This document shows positions 14,583 through 58,201 of a DNA stretch of 64,000 nucleotides, one piece after another. The stretch is from NCBI GenBank assembly GCA_043228905.1, contig JBHGNT010000010.1, positions 16,740,001-16,804,000 on the forward strand. Direction: 5' to 3'. This stretch comes from Azolla caroliniana. Its lineage: Eukaryota > Plantae > Polypodiophyta. The translations under genes and the position numbers were made by a program. Below the pieces are notes generated by a model. The model searched no databases. It saw only the letters and a program-made list of their open reading frames with translations, and was not told the DNA's origin. Position 1 is the first letter of the stretch, and the number at the start of each line of letters is the position of its first letter.

Positions 14583-14890
14583 AACCGCGTATTCTACGTT
14601 TAGATTCTAGAATACCTTTTACAATACACGTTTTTCATAATTTTTCGCGTATTCTACGTATTTAACGAGTATTTAACATTTCAAAAAAGAAATTAAAATT
14701 TTTGAAAAAAAACTTTAAACTTTTAAGAAGTATTTACGTATATGAAGTATTCTACACGTATTCGAAGTATTTAACATATTTTATCTATATAAATATGTAT
14801 TCTAAGTTTCTTTTTTTTAGTTAGAATACTTGAAGAATACTTAGCATACAGTTATATGTGTATTGTATACTAAGTATTCTTACAACATCG
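14583..14890. repeat. GTATT/AATAC-rich patch, possibly a DNA transposon terminus, next to the SEC61G promoter
   Basis: Many cgtattctacgt/aagtattc units, ending ttcttacaacatcg. Confidence 0.35.
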
Positions 14891-16093
14891 TTGAGTCTCT
14901 CTCCTCTCCTTTTGCCACGAGGCATTCTTTTTGGTCTGAGACAATTTGACATCTAAAACCTCGTGATTGTAAACACCCCAATTACCCCCTGTTAACTCTT
15001 AGGGCCGGACAATGGCCTAACACAGGGTGTCTATGGAAGACACTTCACCAAAGGGGTGTTACGGCAAGAGGATTAGGCTCAACGATTAATCCAACTTAAT
15101 TAGGTTACTTAGCAAGATCGTCCTTAATAATCACACGTGTAAGATATAACAATGAATGCAAAACACTAAGCTTCATTAATTATCCGCTGCTCATTACATT
15201 GTATCCGGGCCTTTAAATAGGTTTCCGGTTTGTAGTACAAAATGGTGCCATCCACACCTGTTCGAGATCGGTCCGGATCCGGAACGACATATCGATTCCG
15301 GTCCGTCCGTCCACACTAATAGCTTACTTACAACCATTCTTTAATAATTAAATAACTCATTCGTTTCACACTCTGGACTCCTTTGCCGGCCAGTAACACA
15401 TTGCATTGTCCTATGTGACAGATTTCCAACAAATGATTGCTTTCATGTTCCATATTACAATAAAATCTATATAAGCAGGAAGTTATAGTAGTAAAGATTG
15501 ACATTAATTACAATAAAACTTTTTATGACTTAAGTTTGTCATCAGGAGCACTCTGAATATGCTCTTGATAAAACATTGGTGGTATTTTCCCTAACACACT
15601 GAAACTCTAGGAGACTTTATAGGCATGACAATGACCAAATTCCTAATGGAATGCAAATACATTTTTTTTACTTGATTTGCCGTCTACTATATGGTTTTAC
15701 GCTCATCGAGAGGTGACTCGTCAAAATCTCCCACAAAAATTACCATTGTGATACCTGATGTACCTTTGAAAGAAAACGATATAATACCTCCCATGGTCAA
15801 ACATCACGATTAGTAGAAGCATCAACATTCATCTTTGAACTCGACCACATAACGTGTTCAATGTACGATCAAGCAAACATAAGCTCATGATGTCGCCGAT
15901 TCATCAATCACGATGAATGCAAACGAGAGAGTGAGCATTTGTTTCTTACCAAGAAAAATGGAAGGTTCAAAATTTCAGAGTGTGTGCATGCGTGTGTGTT
16001 ACGATGGCCCAGGTGGGATTGCACATTAGGATGATGGAGATGATTGTGGCCAGTAGGGTGGAGGAGGTGGCCATCGAGATTTGATGAGGCTGG

Positions 16094-16591
16094 TAACAAT
16101 TGGCAACAATTTGGTTTGGTTCGAGAGTATCAAACTCAAACCGTTCCAAAACACGAAACCGTTTTAACCAAACAGTTACAAAAAATTCAAGCTCAAACGA
16201 AACAGTTGTAGAGTCTTTCAAACCTTTAAACCGTTAGAGCCACGGTTTCATGGTTCGGTTTTGGTTTTCACGTTATGTCAAAATTCAAGATTTCACATTT
16301 TTAGTTAAATTTCTTTTTTTCAATATTTCAAATTTATTAAAATTTAAAGATTTTCCTAAAAAAAGATCAAAATTAGGCTTAAAATGTTCAAAAAAATAGT
16401 TAAGAAAATGATCAAGTGTCAATCCTAAACCGTCAAATTGTTTAAAATGTTTGAACTGCGGTTTCAAACCTTTAAAACAAAAAACCATTAAACCGAGAAA
16501 GGCTCAAACCGAACTGGTAAACCTCGAAATTGAATCGTTTAAACCATTAAGCTACGGTTTTGCAGTTCGGTTCAGTCGTTGCGAATTGCTA
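16094..16591. mobile_element. hAT-type MITE (AACCG-rich), older copy
   Basis: Imperfect TIR taacaattggcaac...gttgcgaattgcta. Flanks gaggctgg/gaggcgtc may be a decayed 8-bp TSD. Confidence 0.6.
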
Positions 16592-19429
16592 GAGGCGTCT
16601 AAGCGGCAATTGCTCTCGGTGTCCATGGGTCCTTGTATGTATGTACTTGCCGGCCATTAGGTAACTATAAGTAAGTGCAGATGCCCTAGCCGGGCCATCG
16701 AGTAGCTAGCTATAAGTATGTAAGCAGAAATGGCAAGAGGGGATCAGGAGGGGGAAGGTCCAGGTGTGAATGAGACCTAGAGGGTCAAAACCTAAAGAGT
16801 TCTGTACCTCAAAAAGAGAAGAGGAGAAGAAGAAAAGAAACAGGACTCTCTTTAGATATATGTGGTAGGCAGAGAGGGAGTGGACCCTACCCTAGGCTAT
16901 GGCAGACTGCTCCTCTTCAGGCTACCAAAACTCCATCTGCCTCTCTGTGGAATTTTTAGGGATCCCTTCTTTCTCGACGCTTTGCCATCCGTCCGAAAGC
17001 TCCGCATTCTCCCGCACATCACGGCGCTCGTGAAAATCGCTAGCTGATATTCAGGTAAAGAAAATCGTTCTCATTTCTGTGTGTATGGAAAGAGTGATGA
17101 GCGAGGGAGAGAGAGTGATGAATGAGGGAGATGGAGAAAGAGAGATGAATGAGGGAGAGGGGGAGATATTATTAAACATCCACCTGACAATGATATGATC
17201 TATGGGATGGGGCTGATCCCTTGGTGAGGATCAAACTTAGGTTTTCTCAGATTTCTGCCTTTGATGCTACGGTGTGAAAAACCATGCCAAGGAAGAAGGT
17301 TTCTTTTATCTCATATTAGACATGTTTATGTATGTGTAAACCCTCCAGGGTTTCTGAAACAAAAAGATAATGAATACATGGAGATATGGAGAGAGATTTG
17401 ATGGTGGAAATAGGGAAAATCAACCAGCTTTATGTGATTGGGATAGAATAAAAGAAGATACTTTTTGTGCATCAAGAGAAAGAAAGAAATAATTTTAATC
17501 TATTAAAGGCCGAAATTCGGCCCATGAGACAATCTACTATTGGAAATGACAAGAGAAATAGTACAAGAATGATAGCATTGATTAAACAATGTAGATGCTT
17601 AGAAACAGTAAAAAAGGATAGTGCTATTATGTGGATGCTCAGAAACAATGTGGATGAATAACAATCAAAGAACGTGTGATACTTATATAACCCTATAGTA
17701 TAAAAGACGATGAGCTGTAACAGTTCCCAAATCTAGTTAATGCTTACCTCCCAAGGTAGTACAATGATGAAATTCTAGCTAAAATGTAGCTAGGTCCAAG
17801 TCTTAGTATTCAGTGGTTGTAAAATGATTGAATTACATAGTTAGGCATGATATGAACGCAACTCTTTCATGACTTCCAGTCCGTAGCCATCATCCCCTCA
17901 TGGGCTACGTGGAGTATCTAGATCAGTTGTTTGTCTATGAAGAATTCTGGGGCTCATGGTTGTTTCCTTGATTTCTAATTTTTTGTGCTTGTTGCATGGT
18001 TCATGCAATTGAGGGTGGAGGTGTGTGACCTGTTATAAAGATTTTTTTGGGATGTGACCATCTCCTCCCCTTTGGTACTCTTGTGGTACATAGCAGTGCT
18101 TGTGTATCTCAAGCAAGGAACTAGTAAATTGACACTATTTGTTCAAGGGTAGGTTATCCGAAGAATAGACCCTTGTATCTGCCTCCGATGTTTGCATGTA
18201 GCTCCTCATGCACCACCTCCTCGAGGCGTATCTTATAAATCTTCTCTACTTTGGGAATGTTGACAGCTTGTCCTGTCTCAAACTCTAGTATTTGTGACGA
18301 TACTATAAATTGACCCAAATTCTAGATTTGGTATAAATGGATCTCGAGAGCACACGATCAGGGAAGGAGCTCTTTTGGTGTGATCTGAGGCCTTATGTAA
18401 AATTGCCATAACAACTTATATCTGAGCACAACATGAGAGGTGGATGAAGGGTGACTTTAGATTGTACTGCAAGAGGAGAGTCTCGCTTTGGCTTGCCAGT
18501 GTCATGACCCACACATGCTATAATCAACAAGCTATCTAGAGGCTTTGGACACCCTATACGTGACCCTATTTCATGGTGACTCTATTGTTCTCTAGATAAA
18601 TACTATCTTCTAGAGGTTCTCCATTACCATGGGCATATAGCAAACACTGTTCTAATTATGTCTTGTAGTCCTTGGGCTTTTTTGTGGGTTAGGCATGACA
18701 TCATACGTTATAAATTCTTGTGGTCTCAAATTGTGGTGATGAAGTAAATGAGAGTTCAAGGTTCCATATTGCTGCTGCATAATCAAATGTAGGATAAGTA
18801 ATGTATTGGAAAAACACCTTTTCATATGGGGTCCTAGTTGAGAATATGTCTTATTTCATCTCCAACCTGTTGAAAGGGCGGAGTCAGTTTGCAGCAATGG
18901 CTGATCTGCGTGACTTGCAGTTTGCAACGACAGATTTGTGTTTTGCAATAGCAACGACTAACTTGTGATCTGTGAGGTGGCGGCAAAGCTATGGGTGAGG
19001 GGTGTTAGTGGATTGAGGGTGGAGAGATTAAGAGGGGAAGCAGCAATGGGTTCATGGTTGGTGGCAACCCATTGAGGTGTCCCTCACAGGGAACTGTCGG
19101 GGTTGTGTCACTAGCAAGGGATGTCAGAGAACTATATGTGACCTAGGCTGGCTTTGTGGGCATCTCCGAAACGAGCATTTAGATCAAGGTCAACATGTAA
19201 GAACCTTTGCATTGTACATATAGTTATATGGACTTGGCAATGGTTGTGACCATTTTGGTCTTGGTGCATTGGTTGCATGATATGTCGGTTCCATGTAAAT
19301 AAGGGTTGCTTGCAGAGGGGTTCTGCATCTCGGTGTGGTTGCTTGCTGAGGGATTATACACGAGATTAAGACAAAAATGTCGGGAAAATGTACAAAGAAT
19401 ATCTTACAAAATGAAGGATTACAACTATT

Positions 19430-20630
19430 AAGGGCAAACTACCACGATTTTGGTGGTTTTTACAAAATTGATCACATGATTAAAACACAAACGACAACGG
19501 AACAAGCAAAGCATGACTACCTCCGACGACCACGTTGCCTCGAATTGGAGTAGCTCTCTTGCCACTACGTCCTCCCGTAAACAATCGGAGTATGAGGTAG
19601 CCCAACCTTCTCTTAAAATCGCTGACGTATAACATTCTCCACCGTGGAGAAGACGACGGAACCTCCAAAATAGTCGCAAGTAGATAACCACTAAAATGTC
19701 GAAGAAGAAAACGAAGAGGAAACCCAAAACCCAAACCCTAAAACTCTCGAGTAAGAAAAAGGCTAGAAATCAAATCCCCACAAAATCAAAAGTTCAGAGT
19801 AAAGAGAAAGAAACCCTAGATAGTCACAAAAGAGAAGTGAAAACCCTAACTCTTAAGAAGAAGAATAGTAGCCAAACCCTAGTAGTACACCCTTCACTCC
19901 AAAAATGACGACCTCTAGAAAAAGAAGAAAAAACCCTAATGATCCCCTCAAACAACAAAATGGGCAGCTTGAAATAAGCCCTCATCTCCCCCTTCTATAG
20001 AGAAAAAAGGAATCTATTTCAGCATTAAATGTATTTATACTCTTCTTTCTTCGAAAAAGAAATGGATTAAGTGAACCTTTACTCACACTGATAGAGATTT
20101 GAACTATGCACCCCTTTATCCCCACTTAATGGCTCTAACCACTAAGCCATTCACACTTATTTATTATATCCATGTTTCTTATTTACATATTCAGTGATGT
20201 GAGTGAACCCTCGTTTTTTCCCACTTTTCTCCCTTTGGCCATGCCACATTACGATAACGTTGTGTTGTGATGGTGTGGCGTGGCCAAAGGTAGAAAAAGA
20301 GAAACGGTGAAGGTTCACGCATGTTACAGAAAGGTATGTATATACAAAAAAAATCAATACTAAACAAGAGTGAATAGCCTAGTGGTTACAACTATTCAAT
20401 GGGCTTGTCGAGGTGCAAAGTTCAAACCTCTACCAGTGCAACATGAGGAAAAAGGGTTATTTATTCTCTTTCCTTTTTAAAAGAAAGGAGGGGAATAAAT
20501 GCATTTAATGCCGAAAATAGCCCTCTTTTTCTCTCCAAAAGGAATAGAAGGAAGTTTATTTTGGGTCGCCATTTTTGTTGTTTGAGGTGGACCATTAGGG
20601 CTTCTTCTTTTTTTCTTCTACTTCTCCTCA
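19430..20630. mobile_element. Foldback/Mutator-like non-autonomous element with long inverted arms containing tRNA-like A/B boxes
   Basis: 19930-20155 is the imperfect reverse complement of 20370-20605. The centre is palindromic (cctttggccatgccac...gtggcgtggccaaagg). Left end gggcaaactaccac resembles a Mutator terminus. Confidence 0.55.
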
Positions 20631-20639
20631 ATTGTTACC

Positions 20640-20676
20640 GGCAAACAAGTTTCGCGCCTAAGGGCTCATCAGTGCC
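20640..20676 (-). ncRNA. Minimal type I hammerhead ribozyme motif (Penelope/retrozyme-like)
   Basis: Minus strand reads GGCA-CUGAUGA-GCCCUUAGGCGC-GAAAC-UU-GUU-UGCC: full catalytic core, stem I GGCA/UGCC, G-C-closed stem II, very short stem III. Confidence 0.7.
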
Positions 20677-20689
20677 ATAAGACCACGTG

Positions 20690-21660
20690 GGTGTGAGGTG
20701 GTATATATAGGGGTTTTGCAGGAGGGGTAACATGGAAGGTAGAGGGGATTCAATTTGGGGAGTGGGGGTGTGCGTGGGGTTTAATATAAGGGGTGTAAGT
20801 GGTAAAAAGGATAGGGTTTAGGGTTTAGGGGAGTGAGAGAAAGATTTAAAAAGAGGGTGAGGGGGCGTGTAGAGAAATGTAGAGAGGGAAAAAGAAGTAA
20901 GAGAGGGAAAAAGGTTGCTAGTTTAAGAGAGTGAGAAAAGGAAAAAAAATTAGAGAGAGGAGGGGTAGGGGTAGGGGTAGGGGTAGGGGTAGGGGTAGGG
21001 TATGGGTTTATGTTAAGATGAGAGAGGGGTAGAGGTGAAAAACAGGGGAGGGGTAGAGGTAAAAATAGGGAAAAACAAGAGGGGTATAGTGAGAAATTAG
21101 AATTATGGGGAAAAGGGTAGGAAGGTGGTTAAGGGAGGGGTAGGGAGATAATTTGGCAAAGGGTAGAGGAGTAAATTAGAAAAAAGGTATGGTGATAAGG
21201 GGAGGGGTAGAGGTAAACAAAAGGTAAAGTAAGGGAGGGGTAGAGGTGTAAATAGGGAGCGGTAGAGGTAAGAAAAAGATAAAATTTGGGGGAGGGTTAG
21301 AGGTATGGAAGAAAGAAAAACACCAAGAACAAATTGAGCGCACCCAAACCGTTAGACATACTTGGTGTATTTGGAGGTGGAAAAGATAAAAGGAAGGGTG
21401 GAGGTAGAAAGGTAAAAGGAGGGATAGAGTGTCAATTTTTTTAAAAAGTAAGGGGAGGGTTTGGAGGGTAATTAATAAAGTGAGGGGAGGGGTAGGGTAT
21501 GGAAATATGGAGAGGTGGGGGATGGGTAGAGTGGTAATTTAAAGAGGTAAGCAGAGGGGTAGGATGGTAAATAACAAAGGTAAGGGGAGGGGTAGGGTGA
21601 TAATTTGGAAGAAGTGAGGTGAAGGGTAGGGTGGTAAATAGAAAAAGTAAAATAACAATA
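20690..21660. repeat. Strand-asymmetric G/purine-rich segment with (GGGGTA)n, GGGTAGAGG repeats and short TTTAGGG runs
   Basis: (ggggta) array at 20961-21000, tagggtttagggtttaggg at ~20812-20830, almost no C on the plus strand. Confidence 0.85.
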
Positions 21661-21756
21661 CGATTATAATGCCGGCTATCAAAAGTGTAGTCCCGTGCAT
21701 GTTCCTACAAGCGAGAGGGAGGAGATAAAATTAAAAATTAAAAATGCACGGCTACA

Positions 21757-23289
21757 TAATATAGTACACAAGACTTATGAGTCACATCAAAGTAAAAGGA
21801 ACGCTCCACCTGCTTTCCATATTGGCATTCATTACAAAAGTTGAGCTTTGTACCTTTAGCATTAAGCTTCGTTAGATTACGAAGCATAGTGAGACCCTTT
21901 TGGCTCATATGGCCAAGTCTCTTATGCCACAACTTCAGCCAAAGCAATAAACTTGCTTGATATAGCATTTCCTTGTAAACAATAAAGAGTTCCCTTGTCT
22001 GTGCCTTTCACAATCAGCCTTGAGCCTTTTGACATTTTGCACGATCCTCTCTCAAAGAGAATGCTATAACTATGCATATCCATTTGACCCACAGAAAGAA
22101 AGCTCTTCTTGATCCCTAGTACATAACGCACATTATGCAAAACCAGCTTAGTGGCATTTGTAAAAAAATGCACAGTGCCAATACCCTCAATGGAACATGC
22201 ACGATTGTTTCCAAGGTATACATGGCTATGGTTGCCTGTAGTAAAAGTAGAAAAACACTCCTTGATAGGAGTCACATGAAATGAAGCACCATAGTCAACT
22301 GTCCATGTTTGGGCTAATGCACCATTGACGGTCAACAAAGCATCAATAAGAACATTCTTAGTGATGCACATATCCGATGAATGAACATTTAGAGAGGCAA
22401 TGCATAAGTATCATTAGTTGAAAAAGTAGCACATAAAATGTCCTTGACATCTGACAGCTCCTCTATGATTACATTAGAGGCCAAATTGGTCTACTCTTTG
22501 TCCTTTTGTTTGTCATGTGCATCAATCTTGTCCTTTTTCTTATCTCCAAAATTCTACTTTCTTTCAAGTTTTGCTTTGTAATAGCGGCAATCAGGTTTCT
22601 TGTGACCTTTCTTGCCACACTGGTAACATGTTACATCCTTGCTTTTACCTTTGTTGCTACTTCCCCTTTCCTTGTTTCCACTTTTGTTCTTGTGTACATA
22701 GGTACTTCTCTTATCTGTCTTACCTCTAACCATGTTGGCTGAGCTGCCTCCTTCTCCACTTGTTTTTTTTATTATCTCTTCATTGAGTATAGAACCCTTA
22801 ACACCATCAAAGTTCAAGGTGGGGTTATTAGACAATGAGATTACCAATGTCTCCCATGAGTTAGGTAGTGTCATAAGCAAGAAAATGGCCCTAAGTTTGT
22901 CATCAAAAGGAGCCATTCCGGAGTCCTGTAACAAAGACAAGTGTAAAGCTGCACGCTTAGATTCATCCAGCTGCAAGCCAAGAAGCTTTAGCATTAGATG
23001 TACTTGATTAACATGCGTAGTGTTTTCATATGTAGCCTTAAGCTTAGCCCATATTTAGGAAACAGATATTAAGCCTTTGAGATCTACCAAAATCTCATGT
23101 GACAACCCTTTTATTCAAAATCCGCCATGCATCTTTTGACATGTTCTTTGGTTATTTTGCCTCCAATGCCCTATCATAATCCTTCAGAAAGAGAATTCCT
23201 TATATTCTCTCCTTCCACAAGTCAAAACTTGTTCCCGCAAATCGTCGAATCTCAAATAGATTTTTCACATTTGAGGAGGATGATGCCAT
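21757..23289 (-). mobile_element. Truncated, degenerate Ty1/Copia gag-protease-GAG-pre-integrase fragment
   Basis: CYQCGKKGHKKPDC zinc knuckle, WTVDYGASFH protease motif, LWHKRLGHMS, CNECQYGKQ; stops and frameshifts present. Confidence 0.92.
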
Positions 23290-25285: not shown

Positions 25286-28224
25286 TGTTGGGGTAAAGGC
25301 CCTAAATGACCCCCTTATAGTGTGTACATCTGTATAGGCCTATTTATAAAGGCCAAAAGTCACTAACCACTTTTTTGTTATTTTTGGGCCAACCCTAAAT
25401 GGGTCATATAAAACATAAGTTAAAAACTTTTGCATCTCACTTCAAAGGTGAGCTCCTCCAACTACTGCTCTCTCTCTATCTTTTCTACCATAGCTCCACT
25501 ATTGCATCTAAAGGGCTTATACTAGAGTGAATCCTGAGTATTCCTTAGCCCGATTGACATAATTCCTAACACTTACAATTGGTATCAGAGTAGATTTAGG
25601 GTTTTTGAACTTCTGCACAGTTGCTGTACAGCAAAGAACAGGTGTTCAGACCTCTTTATTGTGAGCTATGGCGCCATCCTCCTCAGAAGTGAAGAATCTT
25701 TTTGAGATTCGACGATTTGAGGGAACAAGTTTCGACTTGTGGAAGGAAAGAATGCAAGGAATTCTTTTTTTGAAGGATTGTGAGAGGGTGTTTGAGGTAG
25801 AAAAACCAGAGAACATATCCAAAGATGCATGGCGGATTTTAAACAAAAAGGCTGTCATATATATTAAGATGGCTGTTTCTAATGAGATCTTGGTAGATCT
25901 CAAAGGGTTGGTATTTGCTTCTAAAATATGGGCAAAGCTGAAGGCTACATATGAAAACAATACACCTGTTAATCAAGTACACCTAATGTGAAAGCTTGTT
26001 GGCATGCAATTGGATGAGTCCAAGAGTGCAACTGAACACTTGTCCTTGTTTACAGGTACCTCATCACAGCTGCATGACTCGGGAATGGCTCCTTTTGATG
26101 AAAAGCTCAAAGCCATTTTCCTCCTAATGACATTACGTGTCTCATGGGAGACATTGGTAGTCTCATTGTCTAATAGCCCGAACTTAACCTTTGATGGTGT
26201 TAGGGGCTCCATACTCAATGAAGAGATCAGGAGAAAAGCAAATGGAGAAGGTGGAAGCTCAGCCAACATGGTTAGAGTTAGGACAAATAAGAGAAGTAAC
26301 TATGCACATAGGAACAAAAGTAAAAGCCAAGAAAGGGTAAATAGCAACAAAGTTAAAAGCAATGACGTAACATGTTATCAGTGTGGCAGGAAAGGCCAGA
26401 AGAAACTTGATTGCCGCTATTACAAAACAGAACATGAAAGAAAAAAGAATTCTAGAGATAAGAGAAAGGAAAAGACTAATGCACATGACAGTTAAAAGGA
26501 CGAAGAGAAGGCCAATTTGGCCTCTAAAGTAGTTATAGAGGAGCGGATGTAGTCATGGAGGACATTTTATGAGCTACTTTTTCAGCTGATGATACTTACG
26601 CATATGATGCCTCTCTAAATATTCATGCAGAGGACAGGTGTATCACTAAGAATGATCTTATTGATGCTTTGTGGATTGTCAATGATGCATTGGCCCAAAC
26701 ATGGATAATTGACTTTGGTGCTTCATTTCATGTGATTCCTATCAAGGAGTGTTTTTCTACTTTTACTACAGGCAACCATAGCCATGTATACCTTGGAAAC
26801 AATCGTGCATGTTCCATTGAGGGTATTGGCACTGTGCATTTTTTACAAATGGCACTAAGCTGGTTTTGCATAATGTACGTTATGTACTAGGGATCAAGAG
26901 GAGCTTGCTTTTTGTAGGGCAAATGGATATGCATGGTTATAGCATTCTCTTTGAGAGAGGATCATGGAAAATGACAAAAGGTTCAAGGCTGATTGTGAAA
27001 GCCACAAAGTCGAGAACTCTTTATTGCTTACATGGAAATGCTATATTGGGCAAATTTATTGCTTTGGCTGAAGTTCACTCCCATATGGAGTTGTGGCATT
27101 AGAGACTTGGCCATATGCGCCAAAAGGGTCTCAGTAGGCTTTATAATCTAAAGAAGCTTGATATTAAAGGCACGAAGCTTGATTTTTTTAATGAATGCCA
27201 ATATGGAAAGCAAGTGAAGCGTTCCTTTTGATCTGGTGTGTCTCGTAAGTCTTGTGTACTTGATCTTGTTCATTCTAATGTGTGTAGCATGCTCACCAAA
27301 TCTATGGGGGATGCAATGTAGCATGACAAAAGGTTCAAGGCTATTGTGAAAGGCACAAAGAAGGGAAGTCTTTATTACTTACATGGAAATGCTATATTGG
27401 GCAAATTTATTGCTTTGGCTGAAGTTCACTCCCATATTGAGTTGTGGCATAAGAGACTTGGCCATATGAGCCAACAGGGTCTCACTAGGCTTTGTAATCT
27501 AAAGCAGCTTGATATTAAAGGCACGAAGCTTGATTTTTGTAATGAATGCCAATATGGAAAGCAAATGAAGCGTTCCCTTTACTCTGGTGCGTCTCGTAAG
27601 TGTTGTGTACTTCATCTTGTTCATTCTGAAGTGTGTAGCATGCCCACCAAATCTATGGGGGGTGCAATGTATTTTATCTCATTTGTTGATGATTTCTCTA
27701 GAAAAATTTGGGTTCAATTGCTTAAATCTATGGATGAAGCCTTAGCTGCATTTAAGCGTTTTTATGCATTTTTGACCACCCAAACATGTAGAAAATTGAA
27801 ATGTTTGCGTACAGACAATGGTGGTGACTATACAAGTGGTGAATTCAAGAAATTTTGTGAAATTTTGGGTATTAAGAGGGAGCTTACTATTCCATACAGC
27901 CCCCTCTTCTAATGGTGTGGCTGAACGATATAACAGGACACTTTGTGAGAGAGTGAGATGCATGCTGTCCACCGCTAATCTCCCTCATGGATTTTGGGGA
28001 GAGGCACTCAAAACTTCAGTACATGTATTCAATAGATACCGTCACACGTCTTTAAGGGTGACATCCCTGAAGAGGTTTGGTCTGGCAAACCTGCTTCATA
28101 TGATCACTTACGTGTCTTTGCCTGCGCTGAGAAACAAACTTGATGCCAAGTCCATTAAGGGCCTCTGCATGGGATATGGTGAAGAAGGCGAAATGGGTTA
28201 TAGGATTTGGATACCCCAGCTCAA
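25286..28224 (+). mobile_element. 3'-truncated Ty1/Copia element: 5' LTR 25286-25577, tRNA-Met PBS 25580-25590, degenerate gag-PR-INT
   Basis: TG...CA followed by TGGTATCAGAG. Gag from 25668, zinc knuckle, WIIDFGASFH, integrase VDDFSR/LRTDNGGDY/NGVAERYNRT. No RT or 3' LTR. Confidence 0.92.
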
Positions 28225-28294
28225 CATCGGTCGGTGCAGATCGCACATGCGTGCCCTTAACCGAGCGATATGCACTGTCCGTACCCGCGATTCC
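28225..28294. mobile_element. Fragment of the TIR of the Ulp1-carrying element family
   Basis: cggtgcagatcgcac...tgcactgtccgtacccgcgattcc aligns with 60807-60869. Confidence 0.6.
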
Positions 28295-28742
28295 ATCGTT
28301 TGTCCTCTTTAATATTTGGTAGCAGTTAGACATGAGCGTGAGTTTCCTGCGAATTGTTTATTCTATCAGCTGTTCATGTAAACTGACATCTCCTCTACTC
28401 TTAAAATACACATGTTTTAGTAAACAGCTGGGAAGGCAGCTCGCTTCATGCCATGGATGTTGTTCTGTAAATTGGTCTGCTCTATCAATGTGAACATGGA
28501 TTGTTGTTCCCTTCTGTGGCATTTCATGTTTCTTACGCCAACTTTTTTTAAAGTTTATTTAAAAATAAGGGGATTGAATTGAAACAAACCACTTTTTTGT
28601 TTTATAAACCTACCAGCTCTGTCCATGTAAAATAATCTTTTTTTTCTTGCCAGCTGTTCTCATCTCTCTTACTCTAAGTTAAGGGTTTTTAAGATGAAGG
28701 AATAGAAACAAAAATACTTCATGTTCCTTGCAGTGTGTGAAG

Positions 28743-41004: not shown

Positions 41005-41619
41005 TGGCATAGGTTCAATGCCTAGTAATCTAATAACTTACCATTAGGGTAAGCTAATTACAATAACAAACTTTGAAAAGGGAAAAATATGTTTTCTTTA
41101 TTTTAATTTTATTTACTACTATGGGAAATTACCTCAACCTAGTGGTTAGTTGTTATGCTATTATTGTTTATGTCTTGGGTTCGATTCCCAATTTTCTCAT
41201 CTCTCTCTCGTTAGTGTCATGTCATAGCAAAATTTTATGTTACGTCATGTTCCTTTTTCTTTTCTTTTCTTTTTTATTAGAAATTAGCTCACCCTAGTGG
41301 TAAGTTGTTATCCTACTATTGCCTATGTCATTTTTTCTTCATATTCTCAAATATACGTTTTATGAGTTTTTGAACGTTTGATTATAATTTATAATGACAT
41401 ATTTTGATTCAATCTCTATAGTTCATACTCATTTTTTTGTAAAGTTTTAAAGTGAAGAAATTGATACTTTCACTAGTTACGAGATGAGCACGTTGATAAT
41501 TGCAAGATGAGCTCATCATCAATACAATTATGTCTTTGAACTATTTGATTTTTATATTCGTGTTTTCTAATGTTTAGTAATTAAGTAATTCTTAAGTTTT
41601 GAGCTTTTAATTGTGTTAA

Positions 41620-42060
41620 CATTTGATTCAATCAATATACAATATTGAGCGTGGTCTTTTTTTTTCCAACTTATTAATCCAATCCAACTTTGAGATGATT
41701 TACCATACACATTTGATTGAATCATTCTCGAACCTTTATTTTTTTTCCAACTTATTAATCCAATCCAACTTTGAGATGATTTACCATACACGTTTGATTC
41801 AACCATTCTCAAATCTTTATTTGTTTCCCAACTTATTAATCCAATCCAACTTTGAGATGATTTACCATACACGTTTGATTCAACCATTCTCAAATCTTTA
41901 TTTGTTTCCCAACTTATTAATCCAATCCAACTTTGAGATGATTTATCATACACGTTTGATTCAACCATTCTCAAATCTTTATTTGTTTCCCAACTAAATT
42001 ATCCAAATTATCCAACTTTGAGATGATTTACCATACACGTTTGATTGAATCATTCTCAAA
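41620..42060. repeat. Minisatellite, 75-bp unit, ~6 copies
   Basis: caacttattaatccaatccaactttgagatgatttaccatacacgtttgattcaaccattctc repeated. Confidence 0.95.
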
Positions 42061-43329
42061 TGTGAATGCGCATATGGTACATATGGTTCATTCTATGGTA
42101 TCAAGTAGATATAATAGAGAGGTGAGAAAATGAGGTTTCGAAGCGAAAATGTTTTCAAGTAACAATTTACCATTAGGGTACTAAGCTAAAGCTAATTATG
42201 GTAAAAGAAAGAAAGATAGAAAGAGAGTCATCTTGTGAATTAAGAGATATGTATGAAGTATCTAATAGAGAAGCGAGAAAATTAGGTTTCGAAGCGAGAA
42301 TGTATTGTAACAATTTACCATTACCGTAAGCTAATTACGGTAAAAGAAATAAAACAGACGTCCAAATTATGTTGTTTTGATCCCTTATCTCCCTCTCCCC
42401 TCCCTTTATCTCATCTAATCCTCGCCTACACCAAGTTTTGTCTACGATTCGGGTGCGTTCAAATCGATCTTGGTGGTCTCTTCTCCCTCTCGACTTATCT
42501 ACAACCCATCAATGATTTCACCATTCCGCACTCCTTGTACCGGCTCGAATGTCAACAAAAAAAACAGACGTCCAAATTATGGTGATAAGAGTGTGTGAAC
42601 AATCAGATGAAAGATTAAGATTAGGTTATGGTTGTAGAGATGGTGATGAGTTGTGGTTCTCCTTATTTATAGCCCCCCCCCCCCCCACTCTCTCTCTCTC
42701 TCCATTGACTCTTTTTGTGGGTGATTCACTTGTTACATTTTTAGTCCAGTACGGAAACAGTCCTTTGTCCTTATCCCTCTCTTTCTATATATACATATAC
42801 ATATATATATATATATATACAGTATAGGATATATTGTACATACATTTAAGTACTATAAGCAAAAGGTAATGTATATCTCCTCTGTACTTCCTCAGAAGAT
42901 CTTCTTGTATGTATGCATGTTCTCAGATAATGGTGTGTGTATTTTCCATCCATGTCCCTCTTCTTCAGACTTCTCTTCTCTTTAGTACTCTTCTGATTGC
43001 AAATTATAGCCTATGATTTTAACTCCTACTCCCTAATTACTTCTATTGTTATCTTCACCTGATTGCAAAATTATCATAGCCTGCTGTTTCCCTTAAAAAA
43101 TTTCAGTTCATGACTATCAGGTAGGTTTCTCATTCATCGGATTCTAATTTATTTATTTATTGTTTTATTTTTCTTCTAATTTATTATTATTATTATTTGA
43201 TTTATTTTGCTATATTATCATTGTGAACAATTTGTAATTTGCAGGCTTCTTCTTCTTCTTCTTCATTTATTCAAATTTTTTTTTTTTTTTAATTGGCATC
43301 CGAAAATGCTGATTTGACTACTGTATAAG

Positions 43330-45661
43330 ATGGTTAAAAATAATGATTATCTGCAAATTATTTTGCAGGGTAAACTTGGAGCAGTAGCAGAGATGAAGCA
43401 AGTGCTATTTAATGGACATGATGATGATGATAATGATGATGATGATGGTAATGATGTGGCATTAAAGATGGCCAACACTGGATCAAATGGGCATGATGTG
43501 GCATTAAAGATGACCAATAATGGATCAAATGGGCATGATGTGGCATCAAAGATGGCCAATAGTGGATCAAATGATGTGGCATCAAATGGGCATGATGTGG
43601 CATCACCAAAGATGGCCAATAGTGGATCAAATGATGTGGCATCAAATGGGCATGATGTGGCATCATCAAAGATGGCCAATACTGGATCAAATGGGCATGA
43701 TGATGATGATGAGGATGATGAGGATAGGGCATTCAAGAGTGCCAATCCATTGGTTGATGATGATGGTCCACCACCTCTGCATGATGTCCATAGTACTTGG
43801 CCTAGTGATGCCACCTGCACCCAAGAGCAGGAGCAAGAGCAGAAGAAGAAGATGAAGAGGGTGATGTTGGACCTGAGTGGCCATTGCTTGGACACCTTCC
43901 TAATTCATGACCCCAGCTTCACTACAAACCTTATATCCCTCCACCTCTCCAACAACCAACTTAAGGTTAACACAAAATCTCAATTCATTAACTAACTCTA
44001 AAAATAATCTTTTATTTTAGTTATTATTTATAATCTCTCTTTTTTTTGGGGGGGGGGGGGGGGGGGGGGGGTCATTTTCATTTCTCTTCATTTTCCCCTT
44101 TACACTTTTAATTTTCTATTCTTACCATTATCTCTATATATTTTTTGATATTTTTTTTATTGCAGCTCATGATTTTACCACTTTTAACTATTTATTTCCA
44201 TTTTCTTTTTCTTTATATTTGTGCGGTTTTTGTTTTATCTTCCCATCATGACCACAACCTTACGCTTGTTTGATGGGTTGGTTCCTAGAGCTTGCCAAAT
44301 TCTATTGGAGACTTGGATAACCTTGAGATTCTAGACGTGCAATCGAATGAACTGTCTGGCCTACCAGACTCAATCGGATTCTTGGCGAACCTCAAACTGC
44401 TCAATGTGTCTGGGAATATGCTCACCACTCTCCCTGATAGCATTGGAGGATGCAGGTAACTTGTTAGAGATCATGCACCAATATCATATACTTTAAAAGA
44501 GTTAAAGCACAAACAAATGGTCCACCGATTCATAAAGGTTGTATGGTAGTTTGTAAATTTTGTATATTTAAGTGCAAATTTAAAGGAGTGGGTAAGCCCA
44601 TTCATTGTCCCAACGAGTTTTTACAAGACATGGCACATGTTTGTATATTACCACAAGAAATCAAGTTGGTGGCTCGAGGAACAATCCACCATCTACTTAT
44701 TCATGTTTGCATCCACATATATATTTGTGACTATGTATATATAACATTTTCCTCCTCATAAGATTGAGCTACATAGTTTCCCTTCAGTCTCATATTGTAT
44801 GACGTATTCAGTAACAATATTCATGAGCTTTTTGAAATGATTTTACTATAAGTTTGATATATTTGTAGGCAATTGGTAGAGCTTAATGTCGGTTTCAATC
44901 AACTCGAACGTATCCCAGCTCGGCTCGGTTTTGACCTTATTCACTTACGCAACCTTTGCCTTCATTCCAACAAGCTCACATTCTTACCTCCGTCCATATG
45001 TGAACTCAAAGAGCTCAAGTTTCTTGATCTTCACTTCAACAACTTGAAGTCCTTACCATCCTCCATGGGGAACTTATCATCTTTAGAGAAGCTTAACATA
45101 AGCAGCAATTTTAGCGATTTTGGGGGCTCATTGCCGTCAACAATAGGAGATCTAGTATTTCTTGTAGAGCTTGATTTGAGCTTTAACCAAGTGAAGGTGT
45201 TACCGATGGGTGTGGGAGCATTAGAGAACCTCAAAGTGCTAAAGGTAGACAACAACCCCCTTGTGGACCCACCCTTAGAAGTTGTGGAACATAGCATGGA
45301 AGCTTTGCTTGAGTACATGTCAGAGAGGTGGAAGACCTTCCAAACATATGATAATAATGACGATGAAGAATTGGGGTTAGGGGGTTCGCATACACCCACA
45401 CGAGCAGCTTTATATAATGTTTGCGCGTCTCCGATGACAACACCTCGTCGCGACAACAATGGGCACCAATATAGTATGAAGACGGTTGGGTTTGAGGCGT
45501 CACCAGTTCGAACACGATCATCAAGTGTGTCGACAACGGTACTCCATTGGCTAGGAGGCATGACATGTATGAATGGGAGGAATTCTATTCCTAATTTGTC
45601 TCTACATCACAAGCCTTTGAGTAGTACGTCTAGTCCATATCACCGTCATCATCAATATTAA
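43330..45661 (+). CDS. Plant intracellular Ras-group-related LRR (PIRL-like) protein. Exons 43330 (or ATG 43393)-43965, 44289-44455, 44869-45661
   Basis: Repeated LxxLxLxxNxLxxLPxSIG units across GT-AG introns in frame, [12 protein letters not shown] cap, no signal peptide. Start codon uncertain. Confidence 0.85.
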
Positions 45662-50859: not shown

Positions 50860-53800
50860 CAAGGTACTGTCATTGATAACTTGACTCTACCCCTTCTATT
50901 GTCACCAATAACATGATTCTTTGGGTAAGCCGAGTAACCTAGTTGTGTCTTCGATAACCCAGCTCTGCCCCTTCTACTGTCTCCATTAACTCAACTCTTT
51001 TGGATAACCCGAGTAACCCGTCTTTGTCAAGGGTAAGTTGACAAAGACACCAGTAATCCGACTGATTTGAGTAACCCAATTGAAAATTTGTGTTGAGTTC
51101 AAAAACTTTTAAGTTCAATTTTTTTTTTCCCAAAGATCAAAAGCATATTCACATATCAAAATATTCGAGTTTTACACATATAAAAACTTCACCATGAAAA
51201 TAAAACGTGGAATCCATCACCAAATGTAAAACAAAAAGTTAGAAGATCATTCCAAACATCATTCCGTCTCAAATTTCATACACAATTAAATTTTGGGCAA
51301 CAAAAGTTCGAAGCAACAAAATTTTAGCTACTAGGAAACTTAAAATGCCACAAAAGTTCAATCAAGGAAACCTTCAAAGATCACACACATTCTGCAAAAC
51401 CATAACCACCTAACCTTTTAGACTTCAGAGACACGACAAATTATGGCCACCATTAAAAATTTTGTGGCCAATTTTTTTTGAAGATACTAGAAACTTCAAC
51501 TTACACAAAATTCCAATCGCGAAAAGTTTCGAATATCATACCATATCCAATGTTGATTTTGGAGACTAAAAACCTAAAAACTCAGAGACCAAAAACCTAA
51601 AAAACCATTGGATAGAAACAAAAAGTTCGAGATCATGGCTCTTGTGGGGAGGATGGCAAAATACAACCATAATTTTTGCATCAATCAACATTTGCGTCAC
51701 TAAGTCAAGGTCATGCCATCACAATGTGGGCACAATGCAAACACCGAACATTCTCGGTCTCACATATGGGCAACTACCTCTTAGCATGACAAGTGCATCT
51801 TTGTAGTCTTCCAGTGTGTGTTTTGGTTTTTATTTGGGGAGTTGCCAATAACTTATTGCAAAATGTCAAGCATCACTCCTCTTTTCACACCAATTTGTTG
51901 CTTCCGATTTATGGATTATGTTTCTACCTCATTTGTTGATTTCGGTGCACTTAAACCATAAAACTTTTTCTTCAGATCTACGACTTGTTACATACAATAC
52001 CCGTCAACAAAACCTATTGAAGGATCCTAACCCTTGCTCGAGCAACTAAACAACTTCCCGTGTTTGATGTATTTGAGACTTCCATCATTCCACCTTAATG
52101 GTTCTACATTCATCTCCATGACAGTTATTTCCTTCATCTCCATGTATGTTTATGTGATATCATCCATTCACATCAGGGTTGTTTAACCTATAAATGGTAA
52201 CGAGCCACGTAGGGTTACTACAATGAGTTGGTGTAGAAAGTAGCGTGCGGAAGCAAGTATAAAGACAGAACAGAAGGGAGAACACTCAGGTTTAATGGAG
52301 AGCTTGAGCTTACACAATATACGCAGGAGAGACCGAGAGAGTTGGAGAGAAGACACCAAAAAGGAGAATATATTATTAAAGACAAAAAACCAATACATAT
52401 ATGTGTTCAATGAACACTTTGTACAAGCCCTAGAAGGACTGACTGGAGTACTGACAGTACTTCAATGCTCATTAAGAGCTCCTACACTAACTCCCAAATA
52501 TATTCCTCACAGAATATCTTTCCTAACGGCCTGACCGATCGGTCCTAGTCGATCCAGTCCTCGGCTTCTTCAGCCGATCCGGCCCATGTTGAGCTTGTCT
52601 CTCAACACTCCCCCTCAAGCTCAACTTGAGGCTCTTCGGGATCTTCACATCTCTGGTTCCTCTGGGCTTCACGCCTCGCTTGCGCTCCTCGACCTGTTCG
52701 ACTCTGCGCGCTTCGACCCTTACGGTCGGCTTGTCTGCTCATGTGACCCTTATCAGCTATTCTGTTGTTGCGGTGTCGACACTTCTTCTGCTACCTTTTC
52801 TTCCGCTTGGGCCTCGGTTGATTCAACTTGTCTGAATCAAACATCCGAACCGACTCGGCTACTTCCGATCGGTTTTCGCTCTCGTCCGAGTTGGCTGTCT
52901 CCAACTCGTCTTCGGTCTTCTCGCCCTCGATTGCGTCATCTCCCCCATGTGTGGTTGGCTTCGGCTCTCTCCTTCGGCTGCTCCCCTTCTGTCCACTTTC
53001 GGACTTTTCCGTGGATGCGCCCTCGGCTTCTTCAGCCGATCCAAAGTCGAACTCGACAACCAAGTCAACCGACTCGGACTCGGTGTCGCGGTCTCCGCTC
53101 CTTTCCTGCTGCCTTGCTTGGTCGTTCGGGACTGTTCTCCCCCTCAAGTATGGCACGTCAAGGTGATGCAACCCGAGCGCACCTGAGAATTGCCGCAACT
53201 TGTCCAGACCAAGAGGCTTTGTGAAGATGTCGGTAGTCTGCCGATTCATCGGCACATACTGAAGTTCGACTTCACCGGAAAGGACACGCTCACGGACGAA
53301 ATGGTAGTGCACCTCAATGTGCTTGGTTTGTGCGTGGAAAACGGGGTTCTTCGCGAGCTGGATACTGCTGAGGTTGTCGCAGTAGATCGTCGTCGGATCT
53401 GACACCTCCGCTTGCAGGTCCTTAAGTAGCCGCTTCAACCATATGGCTTCGCATGTCGCAACAACCGCTCCTCGGTACTCAGCTTCGATGCTCGACAGTG
53501 CAACTGTCGGCTGCTTCTTACTGCTCCACGCGATCGCGGCACTCCTGAGGGAGAACGCGTATCCGGACATGGATCGGCGATCGGCGGCGTTGCCTGCCCA
53601 ATCAACATCGGTGTAGCCGACTAACTGCGCGGTTGCACCGGTCCGATATAGCAGTCCTTGGTCCTTAGTGCCACTTACGTACCGCAGTACGCGTTGCGCA
53701 CACCGAAGGTGCTCCTCGGTAGGTCCCGCCAGGAACTAACTGAGCACTCCGACCGGATAACTGAGGTCGGGTTGGGTGATGGTCAAGTATATGAGGCTTC

Positions 53801-56800
53801 CGACAATTTGTCGGAACCTCGTTGGGTCGCATACCTTTCCCGTATCGGGACGAAGCTTGACGGTTTTGTCCAGAGGAGTCGAGACGAACTTACAGTCGGA
53901 CATCCCGAATTTGAAGAGCATACTCAGCACATAATGACGTTGGCTAATCAATATGCCTTCGGGGGTACGGATCACTTCGATCCCGAGGAAGTAATGAAGG
54001 TCCCCCAGATCCTTCATGTCGAACGATGCCGCAAGCTGAAGCTTCACGCGGTCGATTTCACCTAGGTCGGCGCCAGTGATGACCAAGTCATCAACATACA
54101 GTAAAATACTAACCGGTCCGAGTCGACCTTTCCGGATGAACAGGGAAGAGTCTGATTTTGACGTGACGAAGCCCATCCGACGCAGTTGTTGCGTGATCTT
54201 TGCGTTCCAGGCAAGCGGGGCTTGCTTCAGTCCGTAAAGGGACTTCTTCAGTCGGCATACTGCCGAGGAGTTCGTTCCGGAGTGAAATCCGGGGGGTTGT
54301 ACCATGTACACCTGTTCCTTAAGGTCACCTTGCAGGAACGCATTCTTTACATCCATTTGATGTAGGTGCCACCCCTTCGCCGCGGCTACTGCGAGCAAAA
54401 CACGGACGATCGTCATTTTCGCGATCGGCGCAAACGTCTCATCGTAGTCGATGCCGTGTTTCTGCGCGTAGCCCTTTGCCACTAGTCGAGCCTTGTACCG
54501 GTTAACGGAGCCATCGGTGTTGTACTTGACCTTGTACACCTACCTACACCCGATCGGTTTTACCCCGGTTGGTGCGTCAACCAGGTCCCAGGTCTCGTTC
54601 TCTGCCAATGCGTGCATCTCTTCCTCCATCGTGGCATGCCAATTCGCGTCTTTAGCCGCTTCTGCGTAGCTCTCTGGCTCACGCACTTCCGCTAAACGGG
54701 TCATGTACGCATAATGATGCGCCATGTACTCGTATCCGAACCGCAAAACAGGATTCTTCTGGCGGGTAGATCGGCGTAACCTCGCATTAGCCGATGTCGA
54801 GGCCTTCTCGGTCGACGCAGACTTCACCTTTAAAGACCCGTCACCGGTTCCCTCGAAGTCGGACTCGCGTCGGTCTGACTCGTTCCTATCCGTGCCGGAA
54901 TCCGACACCTTCTTCTTCCCTTTCTCTTTGCGCGTAAGCCGTCTCCTCGGCTTCCTACGCGGGGAATGCATGGCCGAGTCTCCACTACTCGCCGGCTCTT
55001 CATCGGACTGGTCGTACCGACTCAGTCGTCCAATCGGTCCACTTAACCGGAGTGAAATCGGACTCTCTTCGCGGGTCTCGATTTCGGGCTCATCCGGAGG
55101 CATCTCGGCCTCGCTGACCTCATCGTCAGAGCTCGGATTGGAGTCGAGGTTCGTAGTCGGGGGCAGGTACCAGGACGCGGACTCGTCAAACACAACGTCG
55201 CGGCTGACATGCGCTTGTTTGGTGCGAGGGTTATAGCACTTATAACCCTTCTGCTCGTCCAAGTAACCGACCAAGATGCATTTCTCGGCCTTTGCGACCA
55301 GCTTCCTCCTTTTCTCCTTCGGTACATGCACATACGCAATGCTACTGAACACCCTCAAGTGTCGTAAATTCGGCTTCGTTCCGAAGTATAGCTCGTGCGC
55401 CGACACCTTGTCTCCGATTCGGTTCTGGATGTATACCGCGGTCCTTACCGCCTCGGCCCAATAGAACTTGGGCAAGCTCTTCTCCTCCAGCATTGCCCGT
55501 GCCGCTTCCACAACTGACCGATTCTTTCTCTCGGCCATGCCGTTCGGCTCCGGCGTGTATCTACAACTGAATTCACGGCGAATTCCTATTTGTTGTAGGT
55601 AACCGTTGAATTGACCGAAAAAGTACTCTTTCCCGCCATCCGACCGCAGGCACTTGATCTTTCGTCCCGTTTCCGTTTCCACGAACCCTTTGAGGTCCCG
55701 AAAGCAGTCGAAGACTTCGTTCTTCCTCTCAATGAGGTAGATCCACGTGTGCGGCGTGTGATCGTCGATGAAGGAGACGAAATATCGGCTCCCACCAAGA
55801 CTAACGTTTTGTGCCGGCCCCCATACATCAGAGTGTATAAGGTCGAGCTTGTTCCGGCTCCGGTTTCGCTCGTTGGGGAAAGGAAGTCGGTGTTGCTTCC
55901 CGAGCTGGCAGGCTTCACAAATTTGTGCCTTTCGGCCACTAAACTTGGGCAATCCGAACACTACCTGTTTCGATTGCAAATCTTGAAGCCGCTGGTAGTT
56001 GACGTGGCCTATCCGCTTGTGCCACAAGTCGATGTCCGACTCGGCTTTTTGTCCCTTTGCGAACATTGCGGTGCCGCCGTCAGTGGAGTCGAGGATGAAC
56101 ATCCTCCCGTCTCTGCGCCCTTGCGCAATCACACGGCCTTCTTCCTCAATGAAGCACCCGAGGTGTGTAAACCGAACCTCCATCCCTTGGTCGACGATAT
56201 GTCCGACCGAGACCAAGTTTTTCGTGATTGTCAGAACGTGCAGCACGTTCATGAGTTTCCCTTTCTGCCCGACATGGCTAAGGGGAACTTCTCCGACATT
56301 CGCGATAGGATGTGGAGTGTCGTCTCCTGTTGCGACTACTCCAGGTTGTATCGGTTTTTCAAGGTACGAGAACCACTCCTTATGGCTCGTCATGTGGTTT
56401 GACGCGCCGGAGTCTACGTACCACACCTCGTCTGATCTCAGGGTGCTCTGTTTCATTGAGTTTGCTTTGTGTCTCGACACGAAGGCAGACCCTTCTCCGG
56501 CTCTCCCGGAGTCTTCGGCGTAGTGCGATCGCTGCGGATTTCCCTTGTCGGTATGTCTGGAGCCGTTTCCGGAACCGGTTCTCTCCGAATCGGCGCGCTT
56601 CTTCCAGCACTCACTTTCCCTGTGGCCTTTCTTGCCACAGTACTAGCACTCCGCGATGGCCTTCCCTTGTCGGTTCTCATCGCTTCGACTCCCCCTGTTT
56701 CCGGAGGGTCCGGAGTTGCTGTCGGCATCACTTCGGTGCCTTCTTCCTTGATCTCGTTAGCCGCCTCCATTGCGCGCTGACTCGCCTCGTCCTCCACGTC

Positions 56801-58201
56801 CACGAGGCCTATCTCCCTCCATGTACAACATTCTGTTGTCGGTGTGCGTGCTTGTAGACGCACCCGTGTGGTTCTCCTCTACCAGGAGCATCGACTGTAA
56901 GTCGAAAAAGGACGGCGTATTCTCCCGAGTACACACAGTCGTTCGGAACGCTCCGAACTTCGACGCCAAACCTCCGAAACAGATCTGGACCATCTCGCTC
57001 TCCTCGATGTTCACCTCTATGGAGGCGAGGGAGTCGCAAATATCCTTGATCTTTGAGGTATAGTCCGCCACCGACAAGTCGCGTTGTCGTAGGTTGCTCA
57101 ACTCCTGTCAGAGCTGAAGCTTCCTAATTGTGGTGCTCGCGACGAAAATCTTCTTCAGATTCTCCCACGCCCCCTTCGGCGTCTTTGCATCCCGAACATA
57201 GCTCAATAGTTGATCGCCCACACACGACGTGAAGCAGTATAATACCCTGCTCGCCGATTGCTCCCACGACGGAAAGTCTCTGTGTGTCGATTCGGGTGCC
57301 GCGTCATTAGCTCCTTCGACATAACTCCAGTAGTCGTGCCCGATCAGGTACTGGTGCATCTTGTAGGACCAAGACGCGTAGTTGGTTCTGTCGAGCTTCT
57401 CCGTTGGAAGCAAGCTTGCCATGCCTCTATCCATCGTTCTTCTTGTTCTTCTTCAACAAGATGTGTCGGCTGCAGAGAGGTTCTCAACCATCGCGCTCTG
57501 ATACCATGTAGAAAGTAGCGTGCGGAAGCAAGTATAAAGACAGAACAGAAGGGAGAACACTCAGGTTTAATGGAGAGCTTGAGCTTACACAGTATACGTA
57601 GGAGAGACCGAGAGAGTTGGAGAGAAGACACCAAAAAGGAGAATATATTATTAAAGACAAAAAACCAATACATATATGTGTTCAATGAACACTTTGTACA
57701 AGCCCTAGAAGGACTGACTGGAGTACTGATATTACTTCAATGCTCATTAAGAGCTCCTACACTAACTCCCAAATATATTCCTCACAGAATATCTTTCCTA
57801 ACGGCCTGACCGATCGGTCCTAGTCGATCCGGTCCTCGGCTTCTTCAGCCGATCCGGCCGATGTTGAGCTTGTCTCTCATCAGTTGGGTTACTACATTGA
57901 GTTGGGTTATTGGAATGAGTCGGGCTACTACATTGAGTCGAGGTTACTATGATGAGCCGGGCTACTCACTATTGAAAAATTGATTTGGCTTATTGCGATG
58001 AATCGGGCTATTGAGATTAAAATTTGAGTTGCGTTGTTGCTCCAAGTTGGGCCACTGAGGTTTATGTTGAGTCGAGTTATTGCAACAACTCGAGTCGGGT
58101 TACTTCTTCGAGTTGGGCTATTGATACGAGTCAAGTCGGGTTACTTAGATGAATTAGGCTATTGTCATTTGAAGGGTATAGTTACTCAGGGTAACGTGCT
58201 G
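50860..58201. mobile_element. Old DNA-transposon-like element with GAGTAACCC/GGGTTACTC subterminal repeats; host of the Copia insertion
   Basis: ccgagtaacc motifs at 50920-51080 are mirrored by gggttact motifs at 52210 and 57885-58195. No TSD found. Confidence 0.4.
52232..57882 (-). mobile_element. Full-length Ty1/Copia LTR retrotransposon. LTRs 52232-52607 and 57507-57882 (376 bp), TSD GTTGG, PBS 57495-57506, PPT 52608-52619. gag-pol is disrupted
   Basis: TG...CA LTRs with ~7 differences, TGGTATCAGAGC PBS, order gag-PR (WYVDSGASNH)-INT-RT (LYVDD)-RNase H. Confidence 0.98.

Follow-up and report, generated by a model that had tools for sequence, protein, structure and literature searches.

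A type-I hammerhead-like motif beside telomere-complement repeats in Azolla caroliniana, probably the decayed remnant of a non-coding Penelope-like element

We analyzed a 64-kb window of genomic DNA from the fern Azolla caroliniana (the window being the whole stretch of 64,000 nucleotides, to which all positions below refer) and found a type-I hammerhead-like motif on its minus strand, at 20639–20677, just downstream of a C-rich minisatellite, a short telomere-type tract and a TATA box. The motif, its order relative to these context features and the polarity that it shares with them on one strand can all be read directly. Taken with this context, the motif is probably a solo, decayed hammerhead module left by a Penelope-like retroelement that was non-coding and endonuclease-less. 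The window as a whole is repeat-rich plant DNA with a GC content of 36%, containing several Ty1/copia elements and an open reading frame (ORF) that codes for leucine-rich repeats (LRR).

The original prediction had quoted a hammerhead string, which direct reading and location by the descriptor confirmed on the minus strand at 20676–20640. The complete motif was characterized by sequence reading, a type-I descriptor, a core-box search, folding and Rfam searches. On the minus strand, helix I is formed by 20677–20673 (UGGCA) and 20643–20639 (UGCCG), giving five pairs, four of them Watson–Crick and one U-G. The CUGAUGA box (20672–20666) and the GAAA box (20653–20650) are both intact and stand in the correct order, 12 nt apart. 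Helix II spans the 12-nt segment 20665–20654; it is closed by a G-C and a C-G pair, with the G10.1–C11.1 pair present, after which comes a C-C mismatch or a bulged C. Helix III consists of an A-U and a C-G pair around a UU loop (20650–20645), H17 is the U at 20644, and the predicted cut follows the GUU, between 20644 and 20643. This triplet obeys the NUH rule for cleavage sites, and GUU is an uncommon cleavage triplet among hammerheads. The overall geometry is compact and type-I, with helix I open. The anatomy originally claimed, comprising both core boxes, a helix I with a wobble, a G-C-closed helix II, a 2-bp helix III and a cut at 20644/20643, was recovered in full. Type-I hammerheads of animal genomes have a helix III of 1–2 bp capped by a loop of 2–4 nt (PMC4209133).

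Upstream of the motif on the same strand, direct reading located a putative TATA box, TATATATA, at 20702–20709; the spacing to helix I, predicted to be about 25 nt, was measured at 24 nt. A G-box-like CACGTG hexamer (20689–20684) lies between TATATATA and the hammerhead motif. Across both strands of the 64-kb window, the motif was the only match to the permissive type-I descriptor and the sole core-box pair with fitting stems, in agreement with the prediction that a single copy is present.

An Rfam hammerhead search, which had been proposed as a check on the prediction, did not lend support. No family reached its gathering threshold anywhere in the window, and the best local match was to Hammerhead_3, at 15.2–15.9 bits against a threshold of 48.5. 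The 15.2-bit match carried an E-value of 4.5 in an 800-nt Rfam search; with the E-value scaled to the hammerhead families, our own arithmetic gives about 0.4 matches of that quality per 64-kb window. A C/D-box snoRNA reading of the locus (SNORD25, 11 bits) was dismissed as a chance match. The minimum free energy (MFE) fold of the region was not a hammerhead, and its stability was no better than that of shuffled sequences (z = +0.5). Folding helices I and II as a hammerhead gave −6.5 kcal/mol against −7.6 kcal/mol for the MFE, about 1 kcal/mol above the optimum.

Because its loop is only 2 nt long, helix III is unable to close in the monomer. Hammerheads with a short helix III act in dimer form (PMC4209133); since the UU loop is non-palindromic, a dimer paired through helix III would here carry two U-U mismatches. 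Given that the motif has no partner repeat and combines a helix II mismatch, a non-palindromic loop 3 and a GUU site, this copy is unlikely to cut and is probably an inactive relic. The doubt that the original prediction had expressed about activity, on the grounds of the GUU site and the non-palindromic loop 3, was thereby upheld. Taken alone, the motif is weak and not convincing as a hammerhead ribozyme.

The frequency of comparable motifs in random sequence was estimated at three levels of stringency. With the permissive type-I descriptor, 2% of Markov-shuffled windows contained a match, and random sequence composed like the window gave 0.011 matches per window. A compact type-I descriptor, which required four or more pairs in helix I, 8–20 nt in helix II with three or more of its four outer pairs, and 2–8 nt for the helix III segment, gave 6.5 matches per Gb of such random sequence, equivalent to 0.0008 per window. 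A strict descriptor of the observed geometry gave 0 matches in 3 Gb of random sequence, with an analytic estimate of about 0.05 per Gb; this descriptor overstates rarity, because it was written after the motif had been seen. Across the roughly 250,000 windows scanned, our own arithmetic predicts about 200 chance matches to the compact descriptor, and tens to thousands overall. With that many windows scanned, the motif by itself is not beyond chance.

GC skew and repeat searches identified a degenerate C-rich minisatellite of about 1 kb at 20720–21650, built on the minus strand from CCCCTA and CTACCCCTCCCC units and therefore G-rich on the plus strand. It contains (CCCCTA)6.7 at 20961–21000 and a 33/100-nt periodic array at 21440–21650, and the 2-kb bin that holds it has a GC skew of +0.43, the strongest in the window. 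The motif begins about 40 nt past the end of this array. Sequence reading together with repeat and tract searches further located (CCCTAAA)2.7, a plant-type telomere C-strand tract, at 20812–20830 on the minus strand. No other perfect tract of telomere type occurs in the window. It shares the strand of the motif and precedes CUGAUGA by 139 nt, so it is near the motif without abutting it. An 80-nt non-repetitive island within the C-rich array (21321–21398) has a paralogue of about 70–75% identity 21 kb away on the other strand (42397–42475), which also has C-rich flanks and is without a nearby hammerhead.

Read along the minus strand, the order of features is a copia fragment, about 100 nt of unique sequence, the C-rich minisatellite, (CCCTAAA)2.7, the TATA box, the motif, 23 nt of spacer and a palindrome. 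The copia fragment is a truncated Ty1/copia copy on the minus strand (21754–23054; gag, zinc knuckle and pre-integrase), homologous to a relative on the plus strand at 25986–28300. This homology halts at about 21754 and never resumes downstream, and the same position forms the upstream edge of the block holding the motif, where the C-rich block begins. The two copia copies share 70–85% protein identity; they are inverted relative to each other, with about 3 kb between them. On the far side of the palindrome, tract searches of the plus strand found telomere-like C-strand heptamers at 19720–19940, comprising (AAACCCA)3.6 at 19720–19744 and five AACCCTA units up to 19932; these mirror the C-strand tract from beyond the opposite palindrome arm. 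The overall layout is of two C-strand-led units that converge on the palindrome centre.

We weighed against this arrangement the explanation that the motif is a chance match, its short core boxes and few complementary bases having arisen by accident in degraded repeat DNA, while the TATA, G-box and telomere-like motifs derive from an unrelated source, be it a fragment of an old promoter, SINE-like repeats or a telomere-like array at an interstitial site. We consider this a serious but less likely alternative. Several observations favor it: the Rfam score of 15.9 bits against 48.5, the fold z-score of +0.5, permissive matches in 1–2% of random windows, about 200 compact-descriptor matches per 250,000 windows, three defects in the motif (helix II mismatch, UU loop and GUU site), its single copy in the window, and telomere-like heptamers on both palindrome arms. 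As the local 1–2 kb is rich in such heptamers, the association between the motif and telomere-type sequence is weaker than it appears from the distance to a single tract. The joint event, however, is rare. The 128 kb of strand in the window contain one motif and one perfect telomere tract, and the two share a strand with just 139 nt between them; by our own arithmetic, a randomly placed motif would fall within 300 nt downstream of the tract on the same strand in about 0.2% of cases. Moreover, no equally good motif was found in 3 Gb of random sequence, by a descriptor fitted post hoc. Because the placement probability of about 0.2% combines with the rarity of the motif, descent from an endonuclease-less Penelope-like element is likelier than coincidence, and chance is unlikely for the motif and its context together.

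The preferred interpretation, a Penelope-like relic, agrees with the design of known elements. Reverse-complement telomeric repeats next to a hammerhead are a signature of endonuclease-less Penelope-like elements (PMC8557442; PMC12477314), and the C-rich telomere-complement array and (CCCTAAA)2.7 just upstream of the motif, on its strand, match that design, consistent with the Penelope-like direction of the original prediction. In the spikemoss Selaginella, endonuclease-less Penelope-like elements carry type-I hammerheads (PMC4209133), and most Penelope-derived hammerheads in genomes are solo motifs from truncated elements (PMC4209133). Compared with the Athena and Coprina clades and with the Selaginella elements, the Azolla locus is alike in combining a type-I-like motif with C-rich reverse-complement telomeric repeats, close by and on the same strand, in being a solo motif, and in its host, a plant with TTTAGGG-type repeats; for Athena elements, the exact order of repeats and hammerhead is taken from secondary descriptions. 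The locus differs from these elements in that a reverse transcriptase (RT) ORF, pLTR repeats and a tandem copy are all missing, and in that the tract is 139 nt from the motif instead of directly next to it. Furthermore, the Selaginella hammerheads are canonical (PMC4209133), whereas in the motif here helix II is mismatched and helix III minimal. The likeness observed is one of design.

A second point of comparison is provided by the minimal hammerheads of metazoan Penelope-like elements and of animal non-LTR retrozymes. The motif shares with them a short helix III, with two pairs and a 2-nt loop, from which a dimeric mode of action would follow, as well as a short, open helix I and the G10.1–C11.1 pair. 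It departs from them in its non-palindromic loop 3, in lacking an additional base between positions 9 and 10.1, and in being without a tandem partner in a plant host.

We infer descent from an endonuclease-less Penelope-like element, and likewise any past self-cleavage. The sense strand would be the minus strand, running from the C-rich minisatellite through (CCCTAAA)2.7 and the TATA box to the hammerhead. The sense RNA of such an element would carry C-rich repeats complementary to the telomere G-strand beside a type-I hammerhead. Were the element intact and arranged head to tail, its transcripts would begin a short way beyond the TATA box in the upstream repeat. They would be cut at the downstream repeat, where the hammerhead is complete, and read-through or head-to-tail precursors would thus be trimmed. 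The processed RNA would then have C-rich telomere-complement sequence near its 3′ end; these repeats could pair with the G-rich 3′ end of a DNA strand and let that end prime reverse transcription, with the RT supplied from elsewhere.

The search for Penelope RT or GIY-YIG partners that had been suggested with the prediction came back empty for the window. Neither a Penelope-type RT (RVT_1) nor a GIY-YIG match was detected among its reading frames of at least 90 aa or among frames of at least 45 aa in 14600–19950. Other coding signals were likewise absent around the motif, and the only RT- or integrase-type domains in the window were copia RVT_2 and integrase, the copia coding regions having been scanned as well. 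The absence of an RT ORF is compatible solely with a non-autonomous or truncated copy. Self-comparison of 20600–20860 revealed no direct repeat, pLTR-like repeat or tandem copy of it anywhere in the 64-kb window. Protein-word searches with an open frame across the motif and with a frame across the C-rich array were blank, and exact look-ups of 20 window ORFs found none in the protein collection.

Several other features of the window and candidate relatives were also recorded. A nearly intact-looking Ty1/copia element occupies 52500–57800 on the minus strand, with long pre-integrase, integrase and RVT_2 ORFs, a tRNA-Met primer site at 57495–57506 and a GC content of 52–55% against about 36% in the rest of the window. 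An open frame at 44858–45658 encodes leucine-rich repeats (LRR_8 and LRR_4) and probably represents one exon of a gene for a receptor-like product. At 41620–42040 there is a tandem repeat whose period is about 60 nt; a Pfam match to Ribosomal_S10 falls in one frame of this repeat and was discarded as spurious. Two metagenome contigs, L001 and L002, retrieved by a search combining the telomere tract with the hammerhead cores, were rejected as relatives: they contain long telomere-like arrays, but neither has a convincing hammerhead or similarity to the motif locus. A gene-promoter reading of the TATA box, the G-box, a telo-box and an AUG in good context was likewise set aside, since the ORF has 31 codons and the following 5 kb show no coding signal.

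Downstream of the motif, self-comparison, arm alignment and a local Rfam search characterized an imperfect 700-nt palindrome at 19917–20616, centred at about 20266, whose start lies 23 nt beyond the motif. Its arms match at 71% overall, with complementarity rising to 92% over the innermost 24 nt. Both arms contain a tRNA-like A/B-box stretch (20086–20189 and 20335–20438), and both arms end in a T-rich run; the tRNA-like stretches read TGGCTTAGTGG ... AGTTCAAATCT, resemble Pol III A and B boxes and point outward. ARAGORN reported zero tRNAs, so the A- and B-box assignment comes from direct reading. On this reading, the palindrome may represent two SINE-like units placed head to head. Rfam returned only generic, sub-threshold miRNA-hairpin matches for it. 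The far arm was considered as an internal paralogue of the motif and rejected: homology between the arms ends before the motif, so the far arm is without a hammerhead counterpart. A single-arm copy of the palindrome's central segment (TGTGGCATGGCCAAAGG...) is present at 596–641 with 85–91% identity, and the central segment is therefore a dispersed repeat. Additional tRNA-like pieces (CTAGTGGTTAG ... GGGTTCGATTCCC) were read directly at 41130–41330, which suggests a tRNA-derived SINE family in the genome.

The palindrome gives rise to a further explanation, in which the locus is a working unit: transcription driven by the TATA box would traverse the hammerhead and continue into the 700-nt foldback, after which self-cleavage would free an uncapped long hairpin as a small-RNA precursor. 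The one-strand order of the TATA box (20709–20702), the motif (20677–20639) and the foldback (20616–19917) fits such a unit. However, RNA synthesis starting 25–35 nt beyond the TATA box would begin within the motif, so that the transcript would lack the 5′ strand of helix I, the monomer is unable to form helix III, and the arms are only 71% complementary. We therefore regard a working unit of this kind as very improbable. The extended version, in which the TATA box, hammerhead and foldback act as one unit whose ribozyme-trimmed, uncapped hairpin RNA would feed small-RNA silencing of the parent SINE-like or Penelope-like family, is slightly less probable still.

Least probable of all, to the point of being negligible, is a plant LTR-type retrozyme, a non-autonomous element with a hammerhead in each of two LTRs that spreads via circular RNA: a hammerhead-like motif in non-coding plant DNA is the sole point of likeness, whereas plant retrozymes carry a type III hammerhead in each LTR, together with a polypurine tract, a tRNA-Met primer site and duplications of the target site (PMC4918200), and the locus here has a single motif of type-I topology, no LTRs or LTR-like direct repeat, no polypurine tract and no primer site nearby, the only tRNA-Met primer sites in the window, at 25580 and 57495, both belonging to copia elements. 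The retrozyme reading offered alongside the Penelope-like one in the original prediction was accordingly abandoned.

If the preferred interpretation of a Penelope-like relic is correct, the locus would preserve, at an internal chromosome site of a non-seed plant, a trace of the spread of telomere-seeking endonuclease-less Penelope-like elements and their gene-less hammerhead derivatives. In plants, Penelope-like elements of this type have been described mainly from Selaginella. As a single and probably dead copy, the locus alone adds little; it would be useful as one entry in a genome-wide census covering such elements and the decay of their ribozymes.
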